DNA of 63,915 bases, filler included, from Choristocarpus tenellus KU-1152 (lineage: Eukaryota; Protista; Phaeophyceae), in assembly GCA_964200185.2 (NCBI GenBank). It is 9 parts of 9 records of this genome, joined end to end, with 100 filler letters (N's around TTAATTAATTAA, not from the genome) between each part and the next. Parts side by side here need not be neighbours in the genome. Positions count along the whole stretch, not along the records: positions 33,018 to 41,127 come from CAXNAD020005130.1; 8 more parts are not named here. One strand, given 5' to 3'. The translations under genes and the position numbers were made by a program. Positions 32,571 to 41,127 of the stretch are shown one piece after another. The notes beneath the pieces were generated by a model that was not told the origin of the DNA, did not search any database, and saw nothing but the letters and a program-made list of their open reading frames with translations. How positions within the stretch are numbered: the first letter of the stretch is position 1; every line of letters starts with the position of its first letter.

Positions 32571-33169
32571 CTCTCTAAGGTTACAAAACCAGAGACACCA
32601 ACAACACGAAACTCATCAAAAATACAATCAATATGTAACATGTCCAACGTCCAAAAGTGGAAAATAAAACAATCTATCGAACATTTCGATTATTTCTACA
32701 ATCTCAATTGTTCCATTATCGTCCAGTCGACCGCAACATCATACAGTAATACTGATCGTATCGTTTCCATTCACACCCCAATCTTTTCCTCGCCAAAAAG
32801 TCCTAACTCTCAAAGGCTCCCCTACCGCTGACGTTCTTGTCGTCGCAGTAGCCCCCCCCCCCCCCCCCCCCCCCTCTCCCCCCCCCCGCCACCCCCCCCC
32901 CCGCTACCACCGCCCGTNNNNNNNNNNNNNNNNNNNNNNNNNNNNNNNNNNNNNNNNNNNNTTAATTAATTAANNNNNNNNNNNNNNNNNNNNNNNNNNN
33001 NNNNNNNNNNNNNNNNNCTGAGGTAGCGTTTTTTGTGTTTTTAGTGGTACACCGCCACGCTGTGATGAGGCGCCGTCTATACCACTCGCCCTACATCTCT
33101 CTCTAAGCGTGCAGTCTGGTGGGCATGCACTGGGGGTGCTGAATGGTCTGCTCTGCCTTGATTGACGTC

Positions 33170-33550
33170 ATCAATCTGCAGCCCATCACATGAGGATTGC
33201 TTCCTTGAAAGGGCGAGTGCTGTTGATTTGGTTACCTGTCTGCAGAAGCACTGTTTGTGGTCTTTTGACATTGCACTGTTTGTACGATGATATTTGTTGG
33301 AGGTGTGGTATGCTCGAGTGCTCAACTCAGCATCTGATAGATACAGGCCCGGAGCTCTACAGTTGCAGTCGATGATTGACATGGTGCGGAATTTGATGGA
33401 GCGGGTTACGCATTGTGTGCGGCTCGAATAGGCGTTGGGTGTATATAATATGGTGGCTTCCATGCAAGTGGAGTTTCGCTTGGGGTGTGCAGGGGAGAAG
33501 GTCCGCACACACAAGCACCCCAAGCCCCCCAGCATCTTGTGGTTGGTGTA
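33170..33550 (+). pseudogene. Decayed ORF of unknown identity
   Basis: ~125-codon frame (ERASAVDLVTCLQKHCLWSFDIALFVR*YLLEVWYARVL...MIDMVRNLMERVTHC) with isolated stops. Confidence 0.25.
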
Positions 33551-36379
33551 TTCTTGCATCTGAAGACAATATAATAATATTTAATATATACATGTGGTAG
33601 AGATAAATAGAACTCCTTCCACCTCATAGGAAAGGTTGGAATTTCACCTGTTCGGGGAAGCGGACGGAGTGAGACAACCCAAGATCAAGAGTGAGGAATA
33701 ATCTGAACTTGCTCACTTGCGGAGGCACGCGCCCCCCAGCCTCTGCTCTACTTCAGAGTAGGAAATAACCGTGGCCAGGTAACATGTAAAATAGGATGAG
33801 CTCTATATGGGTTCACTGTGTGAATGATCACGTTGGTTGTGTTATACTTCAAAGTATTATTTCGTACCCCAACTGATGTTTTTCAGGTTGTGCCGATATG
33901 GAGTGCTGCAGCAGCAGCGCTGTATGTTGCAGACTCGTAGTGCCATTGAGACACATAAACGGGGAGGTGCACTGCACACCAGGCATAGCGTGAAAGCATT
34001 CATATGCCAGTCAGTCAGTCAAGCGCAGTAGTCCTTCCAATATTCCTTCTCCGTGACAGCATCTGCGAAAATATCAGTAAGCACGAAGTAGTGCAAAGTG
34101 GTCCTCCTCAACATAAGTGGCAGTGGTATAAACAACGTGGTCCGGCTGGATCATTTGGGGAAGTTCACATTACATCCATAGCATTTTTTGAACGAGCTCA
34201 GATAGTTAAACATTGAGATACCACCCTTCCAAATCGCTCTTTTTAGTAAGAAAGGAAGGAATCAGCTTTGCGTTACCTCCTCGTTGACTTCGCACTGTTT
34301 ACGCGCGGTACAACTAACACACAAGCGCGAGAGTAGGTCTCAGGAGCATCTGCACTCGTATCCATGCACCTGGTGACTGACAAATATTGATCAATGACCG
34401 CCAAGAAAAAATGAGGCATGCGTAGTAGATATGCTGAAAATCGTAGCAAGTTCGCCGCCATTTGCTGGTGATTCAAGTGTGTCTAGGGTAGCTGGGCGTT
34501 ATTACTAGCATGACTGTGCGTCCTTGGATCGGGAAGGGCCATATATTACAAGCAGAGGTTCCTCTGGATATAGAACACTGCCTGCTTGTTACCCAGGAAC
34601 AAGATCCTCCCGAGGGGACCATCACCAAGTGCGTCCTCGTGGAAGCACGTGGACGAGATGCACCACACTGAGCGAACAAACAACTGTTGAATAGGCAATA
34701 CCCAGTGTGTCACGGCGCCCTTGTGGAAAAATTGCGCATAGGCTTAGAGCAAAGTTGCCATCGTCGTGCTTTATCCATTTTTATCTTCCCCAACAGACAT
34801 CTGGAAGATCTCAGCGGGCAATGATCGAGGTCTACGCTCTGGCATGCAATTCATTACGTTAGTACGAAAAAACTAAGTACGGTGAGGAAAATAGATGCTC
34901 CTACTCCTACTCCTCTAGTATTGCCGTGTACATGTACATGCGAACAAATTGAATATGGGTACTCAGTATTTCCTACTATTGCTAGATACTGCAGAGTATT
35001 TACAGTTGACAAGTGCTCCAAAAAGAAATATTCCAAGCCGAAGGAGGGGCCTCAAGCAGCGCGGCCAATTTGCATTCCTACGCTCGCTCGCTGTGTGTAG
35101 CAAGAAGAGCAGAGTACCTTGTTTGCCACACCCGATATTTTGCACACGTCCAATTTGCTGCATCCTTTTGCTCGCTAGATCACAGGTGTGGGGGGCAGAG
35201 ACCAAAACGCTCACTGGAATGAGGAATGCACAGCTAGTGCGTCAACTATTGTTCTAGACAAGTATTCTGAGACAATATGCTCTGAAGCAAAGAGTGGATC
35301 ACTGCCTTGACGGGAGCCAGTCAGGGCTCGGCATGGTTAGAGGCCAAGGGTTTCAAAGTCGGCGCAAGCTAATGACATACGGCAGGCAAGGTGTGGTGGT
35401 GCTAGTGCCGACTATGTCGCTACCCGACCCAATCTGCGTAATGTTCGGAAATCATCAATAAACCATGAAGAGTCAGCTCCCAGCACCCCCATCAACCTCC
35501 ACATTTCTAAACCTGTGAATATCCAGTTAATCTCATATACCTGACCAGGGATATTCCTCAGACCTGGCCGGGTCGGGAAATGCAAAGGGACCAGTCCACG
35601 GTCGTGCCCATTCATTCAGAAACTCGTTGTACCATGCCTTTCATTATTTCATGTGTTAACCCTTCCACCAAGGAAATATACATATAAATAAGAACACTTG
35701 GAAGCGCAATATTACTCAGAAATGGCACGAAGTATCTGCTACGAACTATCGATGCAACAACAATACAACACCTGTGGAAAACGGGCAACCAACAATGCCC
35801 AGGGCCGGGTTCAGAGATTAGCACAAGGCTACCCAAACCGCAACAACCGGAGCAACCCCGTACACAGCGTATACGACTGAGAGATACCCAATAGAGTACA
35901 CCGGTAATGTATATATTTTATTGTTTTGTAACTGAATGTCTGCTAATGAGTTCGCCACGAACTCGAGAGGTCGTCAAATTATCTCTAGATAGTCGTTAAC
36001 CCACACCTTATATCGTTTGGAAGATCGTACAGTTTTTTCCCCGAGATATTCCCTCAATAGTTAAGGCCAGGAATAGGATTCCGTAGGGTATTGTATCAAC
36101 CCATATCCACTGGCCAGCCAGTCTAACTTTTTCCCTTGCCTGCCTGGATCATAGCCCCCCATCAGTCAATTATTTTCTGGCATGTCCGGACCATGTCCAG
36201 TACGTGCTATAGAAGTGTGAACATGAGACATTCACACACACACCATCACAATTCTCCTCCGACACCCAACAATATATTTGTATAAAAATTACAACTGCAA
36301 TATTCTAAATATAACAATATCAAATTATATAGAAATACCACTACATAGTATATTTAGTACTAATCTGAATCGTGTGATG

Positions 36380-36695
36380 CTGTGGCGGCGTGGTTCACTC
36401 AGGGGAGGGTGGTGAAGACAATCACTAGGCGAGACCGACCAGACAGACCAAGACGAACAGCAACCGACAGGACGAAGTTAAGGTTGGACAAGTGCAAGAC
36501 TGCAAGGACTTGCAGGAAATTGTGGAGGGGTGAGAATTTTATGAGAGGGGCATCACCACAAACGTCAAGACGTAGCAACAAAGAGAATCTTTGATGTGTG
36601 GCATCTCTGTTTGAAGAGATGTCCAGTACTTGTGGGATTGATCTCTCGAAAACTCCAAATCTCAATTATTATTATTATTATTTTATTATAATTAT
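36380..36695 (+). mobile_element. 5'-truncated LINE-like (RTE/CR1-type) 3' end
   Basis: RRDRPDRPRRTATD...CRKLWR resembles the R-x-GRP-x-x-W-x-D...R-x-x-W end of ORF2, followed by a short UTR and an (ATT)n tail at 36665-36693. Confidence 0.45.
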
Positions 36696-37241
36696 GCCAT
36701 CTCACATTGTACAGATGTGTCAGGGGCAAAACCAATGAAAACTACCCTTAGTAAGACACGCAATAGGGGGGAGAGGGACGGGAGGCTACAGGAGGAAAGG
36801 GCCGGCCAAATCCTGCCTACGACAAATAGTCTCTGTTACAACGCAGGTGGCCCTGTCTAGATGTGCGTCATGCATTTTAAGCTGGAGACACCAAGGAGAT
36901 GGGCAAGGAGGGGCTTGTTAGATTCTTGGGATGCTTCCCTACCTACTCACCCTGGGGTGCAGGACTAAGCTTGGTCGGAGGCACAGGAAGGTGATGGTAC
37001 ATCGTAGCTGGTAATAAAATAGTAAATAGATGAATGTTTTTCACATTTATGACAACTGTTACTTTTTTAGGGATTTTTCTGGCATGTGAATAGTTTGCAT
37101 TGGTCTTTCCCCCAACACATCTGCAAAGTGTCGGAGGGCGTAATAATAAAATAATTATTAAGACCCTCCACTGGAATTGGAATCGGGGATTCCTGACAAG
37201 GAAACCTCAATCCATATAACGGTATATGTCATATGGCAATA

Positions 37242-37417
37242 GGCTCAACATATCTGGGGTAGGGTGGCGGCTGTCCATTTGGGGTCACATTTTGTATGTC
37301 GTGATTTTTGTGTGATTTGGTTGCGTATGTCAGATAATGTAAGTACATTTTTCCTGGTTATCGTCCAAATGGACACCCTGGTGTAGATCCCCCATCCTCC
37401 CTCAGATACTCTGGGTC
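37242..37417. mobile_element. Sola2-like MITE family B
   Basis: GGCTCAACATATCTGGGG...CTCAGATACTCTGGGTC, flanks AATA/AATG; reverse-complement homolog of 9050-9229. Confidence 0.85.
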
Positions 37418-38205
37418 AATGACGCCCTAACAACAGAAAACCTGCTTTCCATACTTTCAGTAGAAATTTGAAACAGGATAAAATAAAACTGAAGAATAAT
37501 GTCAAAACCTATCACTGGAGGCATGGCCACGACCTTGTCGTCTGAGTGTAAAAAAAATTACCTGAATGGCCATAGATAAAGTGTTAAAACATGACCAAGT
37601 CCTTGGCCATCGCCTACTCAACATGAATGGGGCCACTGCCTGGCCATGTATGACTAAGTTCGATAATGCTCGAGTCCGTGATCATCACTGACTCATCATT
37701 ACCAGGGCCACCACCTGCCATGTATAACCAAGTTCGAACATGGCCGAGTCCATGGCCATTGATTGTTTCAACATGGCTGGGCAACAGGCTGTCCCATGCC
37801 CATATGGCCGACAGTGGACATGCTAACTGCCCGGCCCCATGAAAACACCTTGACTTTTCCAGGTTGGGAATTTTCACTCTCGTCTTCAAACGTCGATATT
37901 GGGTATGACATTTCATTTATAATACACGCTGCCTAAGAGACCAACCTGTAAGCAGTGAACACTAGAATCTTTGCATTTTCTCAGCGGCAACAAACATTTT
38001 TCTGGACTGCCCTACACCAGCATTCCTGCACCTTCTCTCCTTACGTCCACAGTCAACATCATTGAGCCCTCAATATCAGCCTAGCAGCCCTTGGTACCCA
38101 AACATGACTTCACTTATCCATACATTTTTGCATCTACTAGGGTCCCCAAGTTAGTATAATGAACGGATTTTGCTACATGTCTATGCCAAAGAATCGCAAT
38201 GACAG

Positions 38206-39390
38206 TTACAACAAGAATTGTGGACGCCATCCAGCACGTAGAGCAATCACAATACCTCCCATAAAGAGTATCACAACAGCAAACAAGCATTGACCCCATC
38301 GGAGAGGCCACCCTGCAACGATTCCATCGATTACCCCTCCTAAGAGTCCCACACCAGGGAAGGATAGGCCACGGAAAGGTATATCAGAAATATGTATCTC
38401 ATCTTCCAGATTGCTGGCAGCATCTTCAAGTGGAAGGGGTACTGATGGTGGAAGATGTTGGCTGTGTCAAATTATCTTATAGGGTAGAGCCGTGTCCGTT
38501 TGGGGGCCAAAATTCAATGTTGTGATTTTGATGTAATTTTGGCTATCGTGTTTGTTAGGAAGTCTCAATATCCTTATTCCGGACATACCTTTTCATAACG
38601 TATACATTTTACCTACTCTGAAACATTTCGGAGTAGGAAAGTGTCATAAAATAAAACGTGGGAAGTCAAGCCCCAAGCGGACAAACAGGGCAAAACACGT
38701 ACCCTCTAAATTCTTTCACTCGGCTTTACCGCGTGTTCTTCGCCTTATCTAGCTTGGTCTTCGACTCCCCATGCTCACCCCTGCTCATGTCCTTATCCTG
38801 CACCTCATCCTCGCAAAGTGAAACTGTTTGGAGAACATTCACAGCAACACGAACGCAACATCCATGTAAAAACAGGGTAGTGGTTGAAACATAAGGCTGT
38901 TAATCTGTTTTTCCTTGATACGATACAGTTCCACCAGTCAACACTGACTCATGATTGGTCTGTTACGCACTGGTCGTTACTGTTACTAGTCATCATGGCC
39001 ACATCAATTACCGTCAGAACACCGCAGTACAAAACAATCGCTCTGCACTCACTCTACACAGAGGAATAGTGTGCGTCACTTGAGTTGCATCACGTATTGA
39101 TTCAAGTTTGTTCTCTTGTTCTCTTGTTTGTTATTCTTTTTTCTCTCTCTCGTTCTTCTTATCAGGAGAAGATGACAGTTGTACGTTAATCGTTGAATAA
39201 TGTTTCTTTCTTGGCCGTCATTGATCCCACAAAATGCACCAACCTAACTCTGGAATAAGTGAATACCTAACATACACCTGGATGTAAATAATCAGAGTTA
39301 AAACCATCCACGGAAACCCTTGCCAGGCAAGGTAACAAGCCTCTCCACAGAGGATGGACTTTTCCCGTTGAGTATGTCATGAAAGAACAC
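38206..39390 (-). CDS. 3' exons of an unknown protein with a C-terminal transmembrane segment
   Basis: Exons ~39390-39278 (phase 1), 38823-38730 and 38461-38206 join in frame: ...LHP|VSLCEDEVQDKD...KNTR|QHLPPSVPL...CLFAVVILFMGGIVIALRAGWRPQFLL*. Confidence 0.55.
38464..38721 (-). mobile_element. MITE family A, copy A4, inserted in coding sequence
   Basis: Colinear with A3; perfect 4-bp TSD GGCT at 38460-38463 and 38722-38725. Confidence 0.92.
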
Positions 39391-40499
39391 TGAATTCACA
39401 TCACATCATTTTCGACGGAGAGATCAATGACCTCGGTCACAGCAGAATAAATACATCGGTGCTTTGCGGCACAATCACATCTATTCACAACACAGACTAC
39501 GAATATTACTAATAGGTGCTTTGCAACACCATGATTCCTCATCGCTCGTAGTCTACGCATTTTGCTTACATGTACGATACATTCGATTTAGGTTTCAACA
39601 GTAATTAAACAGAAGAGATATTGAATTGGTCGAATACATCAGTATCCTGACCAATTAGAGGCCCAAATTTGACCAAACTGGTATGGGTTGGACGGCACCA
39701 TATTAAGCGTTTCTGTTTCTTCTGTTTGTGTGTGTTGAGAGATTTTTATCCACTCTGGCTCGGGGACCGGACAGTTTCTAAATCTTGATGGAGCTGGTTT
39801 GGACAAGTCAGAAAATGATGGAACCATTCTGTCGGGTTGGTGGTCTGTTTTTTCACATTTTCATGGACACTTGGAAGGCGGGTTAATAATACGCGTATGT
39901 AAGAATGGTGATACTCGCCTTGAAGTATCATACAACAGTACCTAGAAGTAGAGAGAACTCTCTAGCATAGAAAGGTTCAAATCTTTTCAGGAGCATCGTT
40001 GTTGTGCCAATGAAACGCGAAGACTAGAGGGAGAAGCGTCGTGTGCTGAAACGACGGTTGCAACTGAAGAAGGTCGAGGTCGAATGATCGTTCATTACCC
40101 ACGCTAAGGTGAGGAACTCAAGCGAGGGGTGGAAGGAGGGAAGGGTGTATCGTCAAGATCAGATGTGTTGTGGCAGTGATTCACCCCCATTCGCCTCGTA
40201 GGATGGTGAGTTGTGGATAGAATTCATTTCCACCCCTGACGTCGCGTTGGGTTAGGGTTCTTGGGTATTTTTTATCCTGCACGGGAACGTCAGGATATCT
40301 CGTGATGGAGCATGGTTATGTGCCCACATTTCAGTATCATCTTATGGCAGGAGGTTGAGGTCTCAGGGCGGTGACGACATTCGCTGGGTGGTGGACGCTG
40401 ATTTTTATGGTCTCGTCTGGGAGGCTCTGTCTTGTACTCAGAGGGCAAAGAAACCACCCTGAGACATCTCAAGTCCACAAGTGGTGAGAGGATGCCGTT

Positions 40500-40960
40500 C
40501 ACTCTCTTGTTAGTACGTACCCCCAATCAAAGTCCTCTGTTAGTGTTTGGACGAATAGCACCCGCATCGTATTGTTTGGATCTCTCCCATCGCGATCCCA
40601 TCTGGTCGAATAGTTTGCTACGTGCTTACTCCCATTCCACAAGACAGTCCCTCTTCCCTTCGTGGTTCCTCACTGTTGGTCGGTTTCCATGTGTAGACAA
40701 CTTCTCGTCGTCTGGCCACGTTCCACTTCACCGCAGCATTACCCTAGCATACCCACGGGGTGTTCCCTCCTTCCAAGGCCACCCTCCCGCCTGAAGCATC
40801 AACAGATTTTGTCTGAGGGCTTGGTTGTCCGAGATCCGAGACTCGAATCGATTGAAGCCGGAAGACCGAATGCACCTCGATCTTTTTTCCGTCTAGTAGT
40901 GGTAACCCGCTTAGCACTGGCATGCAAACTCCGAACATCGATGCTTGTAATGTGCAAGGC
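40500..40960 (-). mobile_element. Decayed Ty3/gypsy chromovirus-like pol 3' end
   Basis: KIEVHSVFRLQSIR (cf. integrase C-terminal IHPVFHVSLL), then chromodomain-like HEGKRDCLVEWE, then a G-rich tract. Frameshifted. Confidence 0.4.
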
Positions 40961-41105
40961 AAAGGATACGGCTGGGAGTAAGGAGCCTGCTAGGTGGTGA
41001 ACCTTCCAGATTAGTCTGTATGTGTTACTGCAAGAACTTGAATCTGATCTCGCGCGAGTCGACCCTGCGCACTTGACTTGATTTGTTTCTCTCGTGTTAG
41101 CCTAT

Positions 41106-41127
41106 GGGTCAAAGTATCTTAGGGGGG
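41106..41127. mobile_element. Terminus of a Sola2-like MITE at a contig end
   Basis: GGGTCAAAGTATCTTAGGGGGG. Confidence 0.65.

Follow-up and report, generated by a model that had tools for sequence, protein, structure and literature searches.

A MITE-like element of 258 nt is inserted next to a putative orphan exon in a short contig of the phaeophycean Choristocarpus tenellus KU-1152, and the reading that we favor, with a probability of about 0.35, is that it landed at a position that was already non-exonic, for example within an intron of 75 nt. The contig (CAXNAD020005130.1) occupies positions 33018–41127 of the window, that is, of the whole stretch of DNA that was analyzed (63,915 nt, filler included), and all positions are those of the window. 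An earlier note on this DNA had proposed instead that the insert created an intron within a coding exon. Such a creation is unproven, and other equally tidy splice patterns fit around the element. The element and the repeat that flanks it are the following.

38464–38721, no strand: 258-nt MITE-like element whose terminal inverted repeats are imperfect and which contains a palindrome
38460–38463, no strand: first copy of the 4-nt direct repeat GGCT (target-site duplication); AGCC on the minus strand, its AG being the acceptor proposed by the earlier note
38722–38725, no strand: second GGCT copy of the 4-nt direct repeat, likewise AGCC when read on the minus strand

That the insert is a MITE-like insertion is well supported, on account of its imperfect inverted ends, its hairpin, its AT-richness and the 4-nt direct repeat that abuts it. 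The GGCT copies directly abut the inverted termini (with fixed ends, the chance of this is 1/256), and the coordinates of the element and of the duplication on both sides, as first reported, agree with a direct reading of the sequence. Pairing between the ends is imperfect and comprises the termini G.GT.AAA, the stretch AGGGTA and a core of 12/13, TGTCCG(C/T)TTGGGG; the termini match at 17 of 23 positions with one gap. This inverted match exceeds that of shuffles (P = 0.0055), and an equally good one occurs in none of the 2449 other 258-nt spans of the contig. When folded, the RNA of the element forms a long hairpin (z = −3.7). With 39.5% GC vs. 46% in the contig, the element stands out from its surroundings as AT-rich. 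It is short (the limit for MITEs is under about 800 nt) and non-coding, with stops in all three minus-strand frames. In size, inverted ends, short duplication, hairpin RNA and a position adjacent to an exon, it resembles the ordinary MITEs of introns and untranslated regions. On the other hand, the common Stowaway and Tourist MITEs have TA or TAA as duplication, whereas here the 4-nt GGCT is duplicated. The earlier note called the family of the element abundant, but we did not observe a second copy within 33018–41127. A scan of a metagenome collection with the inverted-repeat pattern gave chance matches only, and a 20-mer taken from the element did not occur in the prokaryotic (genome) or viral contig collections.

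The contig contains other repeats. A second element bounded by inverted repeats is present at 36674–37158, with 68-nt arms (36677–36744 and 37091–37158, 346 nt apart) that are about 77% complementary; its outer ends are rich in AT and (ATT)n-like. This is probably a further non-autonomous transposon, with a sequence unrelated to that of the 258-nt element. Two imperfect copies of a direct repeat, each of ~48 nt (37630–37677 and 37705–37751, 81% identity, spacing about 75 nt), sit within a minus-strand ORF of 100 codons (37617–37916). Finally, a 23-nt inverted match (91%) links 34389–34411 and 39204–39226 (GATCAATGACCGCCAAGAAAAAA and TTCTTTCTTGGCCGTCATTGATC, arms 4.8 kb apart). This match may be due to chance or may be what remains of another repeat.

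Two open frames on the minus strand flank the insert.

38729–38899, minus strand: ORF1, 57 open codons with the end ...DKAKNTR; in-frame ATG at 38788–38786; TAA at 38728–38726
38209–38466, minus strand: ORF2, 86 open codons, (HS)QHLPP...RPQFLL; stop at 38208–38206; hydrophobic C-terminal helix

On its strand, ORF1 runs ...MSRGEHGESKTKLDKAKNTR up to the TAA. There is no ATG in ORF2 before codon 67, so that an upstream exon is needed. The downstream frame is open as the earlier note had claimed (after H and S, 84 codons until the stop), and deletion of the element with one GGCT does give KNTR-stop-SQHLPP, in frame with one stop. The description of an otherwise continuous reading frame split by the element fails, however, since the reconstructed empty site has an in-frame TAA. 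To be in frame with one stop is uninformative in itself, because consecutive stop-to-stop frames of one phase are always one stop apart.

The two frames were taken as two pre-specified ORFs and their codon-position periodicity was compared with a Markov null. The chi2 of ORF2 is 23.0 (P = 0.001), the highest among the 61 contig ORFs of 55 or more codons, and the value for its body is reached by 0 of 971 contig windows. For ORF1, chi2 is 16.0 (P = 0.015), and the last 16 codons of ORF1, abutting the TAA, reach 14.3 by themselves (P about 0.02–0.03). The test is blind to strand. Contig-wide, the periodicity is borderline (the probability that the best ORF reaches 23 or more is 0.048), and the sliding-window maximum across the contig is not significant (P = 0.23). 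ORF2 also holds the most hydrophobic 19-mer among 130 contig ORFs. The AlphaFold2 model of ORF2 (mean pLDDT 66) has a disordered N-terminal part and one long helix at residues 37–77. Altogether, ORF2 is likely to be coding now or to have been so until recently, and the 3-base periodicity of both flanks suggests that there may be a small orphan gene at the locus. Raised 3-base periodicity (chi2 17–20) is also present at 33348–33542 and 34443–34622, where the ORFs are without Pfam match.

Searches for homologs, with ORF1 and ORF2 taken separately, gave little. Ten ORFs looked up by exact sequence in a protein index had no record there. Nothing significant was found in Pfam for about 127 ORFs (40 or more codons) of the 8.1-kb contig, the best E-value being 0.0011 among 97 tests. 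Neither a homolog nor a Pfam family was found for ORF1, and none for ORF2 by word search and Pfam; the plus-strand frame of the locus is without homolog as well. With ORF2, the ESM Atlas returned no usable match and ESM recognition is low. An exhaustive phmmer search of ORF2 against 1.84 billion representatives gave two matches, both to bacterial NACHT-WD40 proteins. We do not retain ORF2 as a WD40-repeat protein. The two matches are inflated by 4–8 near-identical repeats, the Pfam WD40 family gives no match at E ≤ 1, and an HMM of the repeat unit made from the two NACHT-WD40 proteins leaves ORF2 outside its 15 best ORFs. The predicted structure, in addition, is helical and not beta. Shuffled ORF2 never scores against the two targets, which were themselves picked from 1.8 billion proteins. 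In the 8.1-kb piece there is no tRNA and no credible Rfam match, with one chance match to a lncRNA. A variant genetic code with TAA as sense was also considered; no reassignment gives the contig an outstanding frame. CpG is moderately depleted over 33018–41127 (observed/expected 0.68), with an excess of TG/CA (1.24). Together with the lack of a Pfam-recognizable ORF, this points to a eukaryote that methylates CpG and whose genes are sparse or have short exons.

These searches bear on an alternative in which there was never a gene, the element sits outside coding DNA, and it is by coincidence in a stop-poor stretch that the frames are open, share a phase and come with a GT and an AG. At 38117–38522, all but one of the six reading frames stay open for 43–89 codons over ~400 nt, on both strands, and three of them for 86–89 codons. 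The exception, with no open run of 40 codons, is the plus frame codon-aligned to ORF2. Since the stretch is so poor in stops, frame-joining introns are easily drawn there. The open frames on both strands, the empty Pfam search of the contig, the orphan state of ORF1, ORF2 and the plus-strand frame, the low ESM recognition and the contig-wide periodicity (P = 0.048 for the best ORF, 0.23 for the window maximum) are all as expected without a gene. But the periodicity of the frames specified beforehand (P = 0.001 for ORF2 and 0.015 for ORF1), the absence of any equal to the ORF2 body among the 971 windows, and the location of the strongest hydrophobic helix of the contig in ORF2 make this alternative doubtful.

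If there is a gene, the question becomes which splice sites surround the insert. A full listing of the minus-strand GT-AG pairs that enclose the element and enter the frame of ORF2 gave 423 frame-preserving solutions. The splice scores come from a generic matrix and not from the signals of the organism itself. Three spans are considered here (slashes mark the junctions).

38462–38729, minus strand: intron proposed by the earlier note, 268 nt, GCG/GTAAAG ... GACACAG/CC, phase 2
38442–38778, minus strand: rival intron, 337 nt, GGG/GTGAGC ... CTTCCACCATCAG/TA, phase 1, rank 3 of 423
38464–38752, plus strand: control GT..AG span, 289 nt; its removal takes out the element and brings together 66 + 42 open codons (108)

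According to the first of these, the element hit a coding exon and is now spliced as a new intron of 268 nt, with the AG taken from the duplication and the GT 8 nt upstream in the exon. The proposed donor, CG/GTAAAG, has its G at 38729, and the proposed acceptor, TTTGACACAG/C, has its own at 38462. The coordinates and the splice arithmetic are exact. Removal of the 268-nt GT..AG span leads to KNTR/QHLPP, with the stop and the element gone, and the net cost of two codons is right, the candidate splice amounting to −6 nt relative to the empty site. Without the insert, merely 6 nt of the span are left; if the pair 38729/38462 is used, the intron must therefore be new. The joined frame has 141 codons, the longest obtainable. 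In ORF1 the periodicity continues up to the TAA, and in ORF2 it is present from the acceptor on. The TAA falls exactly among the handful of bases that would leave together with the element, as a phase-2 GTAA donor would predict. The GT of the donor would probably result from an N-to-T change that also produced the TAA. Published introners, moreover, take their AG from the duplication, use exonic sites, and gain or lose codons.

Several observations speak against this intron. The empty site is not open, so that a null intermediate and a rescuing mutation have to be assumed. Judged with the generic matrix, donor and acceptor are both weak (the pair comes 38th among the 423), and neither site lies within the element, the donor being 8 nt outside and the AG in the duplication. 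Third-position usage differs between ORF1 and ORF2 (P = 0.016), as do the two-fold R-ending codons (P = 0.04), with no significant difference at four-fold sites. There is also an effect of selection. Insertion of the element was simulated throughout the emptied contig, at each site and in both strands and orientations, and 1.7% of these insertions had GT..AG within 12 nt of the ends joining at least 141 open codons (0.33% with stricter per-side thresholds). This rate of 1.7% is not rare enough alone, because the earlier reader had inspected several copies. No homolog or second copy was found in the searches made, the opposite strand likewise offers a joined frame of 108 codons, and an older intron of 75 nt with better signals explains the same frames. 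On balance, we regard the splicing of the insert as a new intron as unlikely. Two variants were tried and discarded. With exact removal of the element and one duplication, the TAA stays and no GT/GC/GA..AG pair fits the boundaries. With a donor inside the element (GA/GTGAAA at 38719), the TAA is retained and the frame shifted.

With the rival pair, the intron from 38778 to 38442 has a length of 75 nt before insertion, and both the ATG at 38788 and the frame of ORF2 are kept (MSR/VPLPLED...). The donor GTGAGC and the acceptor CTTCCACCATCAG outscore the pair 38729/38462 with the generic matrix. No clear branch-point motif was found in this intron. The 75-nt intron is favored because of the better donor and acceptor, the same ATG and frame, and an ordinary ancestral length. 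In the favored reading, a non-autonomous DNA-transposon-like element (258 nt, 4-nt duplication GGCT) would have inserted just upstream of the coding-like exon ORF2, whose product would be disordered at first and then form a hydrophobic helix. In this, the most economical reading, the landing site would be sequence that was already non-exonic, and the best candidate for it is the short older intron of about 75 nt that extends from the donor at 38778 to the acceptor at 38442. The element would then be removed passively with the older intron, which would be enlarged and not created. No extra mutation is required, since the TAA is simply intronic. This reading is also supported by the ease with which frame-joining GT-AG solutions arise in the stop-poor region. 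On the other hand, the 16 codons from 38776 to the TAA would be intronic and yet 3-base periodic (P about 0.02–0.03), an ancestral length that is a multiple of 3 with a single in-frame stop would be a coincidence, and the gene is without homolog or Pfam support in the searches made. What can be read from the sequence is the anatomy of the element, the frames, the periodicity and the presence of alternative splice sites, whereas the expression of the locus as a gene and the choice of splice sites are inferred.

Several frame-joining GT-AG solutions occur also on the plus strand, and the third span serves as a control. There, the donor GCT/GTGTCA begins at the first base of the element (38464) and a pyrimidine-rich acceptor, GTGTTCTTCGCCTTATCTAG, ends at 38752. 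The periodicity could then come from a plus-strand exon at 38265–38463, with the element in a plus-strand intron from 38464 to 38752. Such a gene would have a donor exactly at the edge of the element, an acceptor rich in pyrimidines and 66 + 42 codons joined; in amino-acid composition the plus frame scores no worse than ORF2, and the chi2 test cannot tell the strands apart. The amino-acid composition score does not separate the strands at the locus either. But the downstream frames that were scored (38726–38891 and 38753–38877, neither being the joined SWSSTP... frame) have a poor composition, the frame is without homolog, and the joined frame is shorter than the minus-strand one. A gene on the plus strand is very improbable.

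Splicing may also be dispensed with. ORF1 and ORF2 could have been one exon of a gene that died recently, with the insertion and the TAA as independent lesions and no rescue by splicing. The frames are in one phase with their codon periodicity still visible, no splice site has to be assumed, and, according to a review, insertion in an exon normally inactivates the gene. Two lesions at most 5 nt apart, with none elsewhere in 143 codons, would however represent a coincidence of about 2% by our estimate, and we found no homolog with the intact ancestral form. We consider a recently dead gene quite unlikely, and retain the insertion in an already non-exonic position as the preferred reading.

The mechanism proposed by the earlier note lies inside the known range of introners. 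Introners (introner elements, or introner-like elements) are MITE-like DNA transposons that create spliceosomal introns, with examples such as IE1 of Micromonas pusilla and those of Chrysochromulina sp., Symbiodinium, Polarella glacialis and Aureococcus. Transposon-made introns are established in Micromonas, Aureococcus, dinoflagellates, haptophytes and fungi. Among the published variants are 4-nt duplications, an AG co-opted from the duplication, both sites drawn from the duplication or the neighboring exon, and neighboring codons gained or lost. A 3′ AG co-opted from the duplication is known in M. pusilla and in Chrysochromulina (with a 4-bp duplication). The element analyzed here is similarly short (258 nt), with inverted ends and a target duplication within the 3–8 nt of introners. 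The candidate acceptor AG would also come from the duplication, with a net change of −6 nt, but other frame-preserving pairs exist and exact removal leaves the TAA. Unlike the introners compared, the element carries neither splice site. Its candidate donor lies 8 nt outside and coincides with the in-frame stop of the empty site. One copy is visible within 33018–41127, and the splicing is here a sequence-based candidate. The comparison with Symbiodinium is less close. In that case, the 5′ site comes from a GHNN duplication and the AG stands at the end of the element, a pattern that GGCT/AGCC does not fit.

In maize, transposons of the Ds/dSpm type are spliced imprecisely out of exons ("transposable elements as introns"), as shown by cDNA of defined alleles. 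Cryptic donor and acceptor sites near or in the element are used, and few codons are gained or lost. The candidate removal from an exon via nearby sites, with few codons changed, would be of the same kind.

At present, the locus amounts to an orphan region that resists annotation and carries a transposon insert. There is a small chance that a MITE family with a 4-nt duplication acts here as an intron source without splice sites of its own, where a duplicated AG as acceptor and a GT donor due to a point change would rescue a small membrane-protein gene with two codons lost. In such a rescue, the GT donor, in the exon 8 nt upstream, would read as an in-frame TAA in the unspliced RNA. If the 268-nt span is spliced, the case would be a clean birth of an intron at a single locus, since no more than 6 nt of the intron could be older than the insertion. 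An element without splice sites would then have been intronized through its target duplication and a mutation in the flank. The gain would be one more family and one more host, and not a new principle, within a range already described for algae and dinoflagellates.
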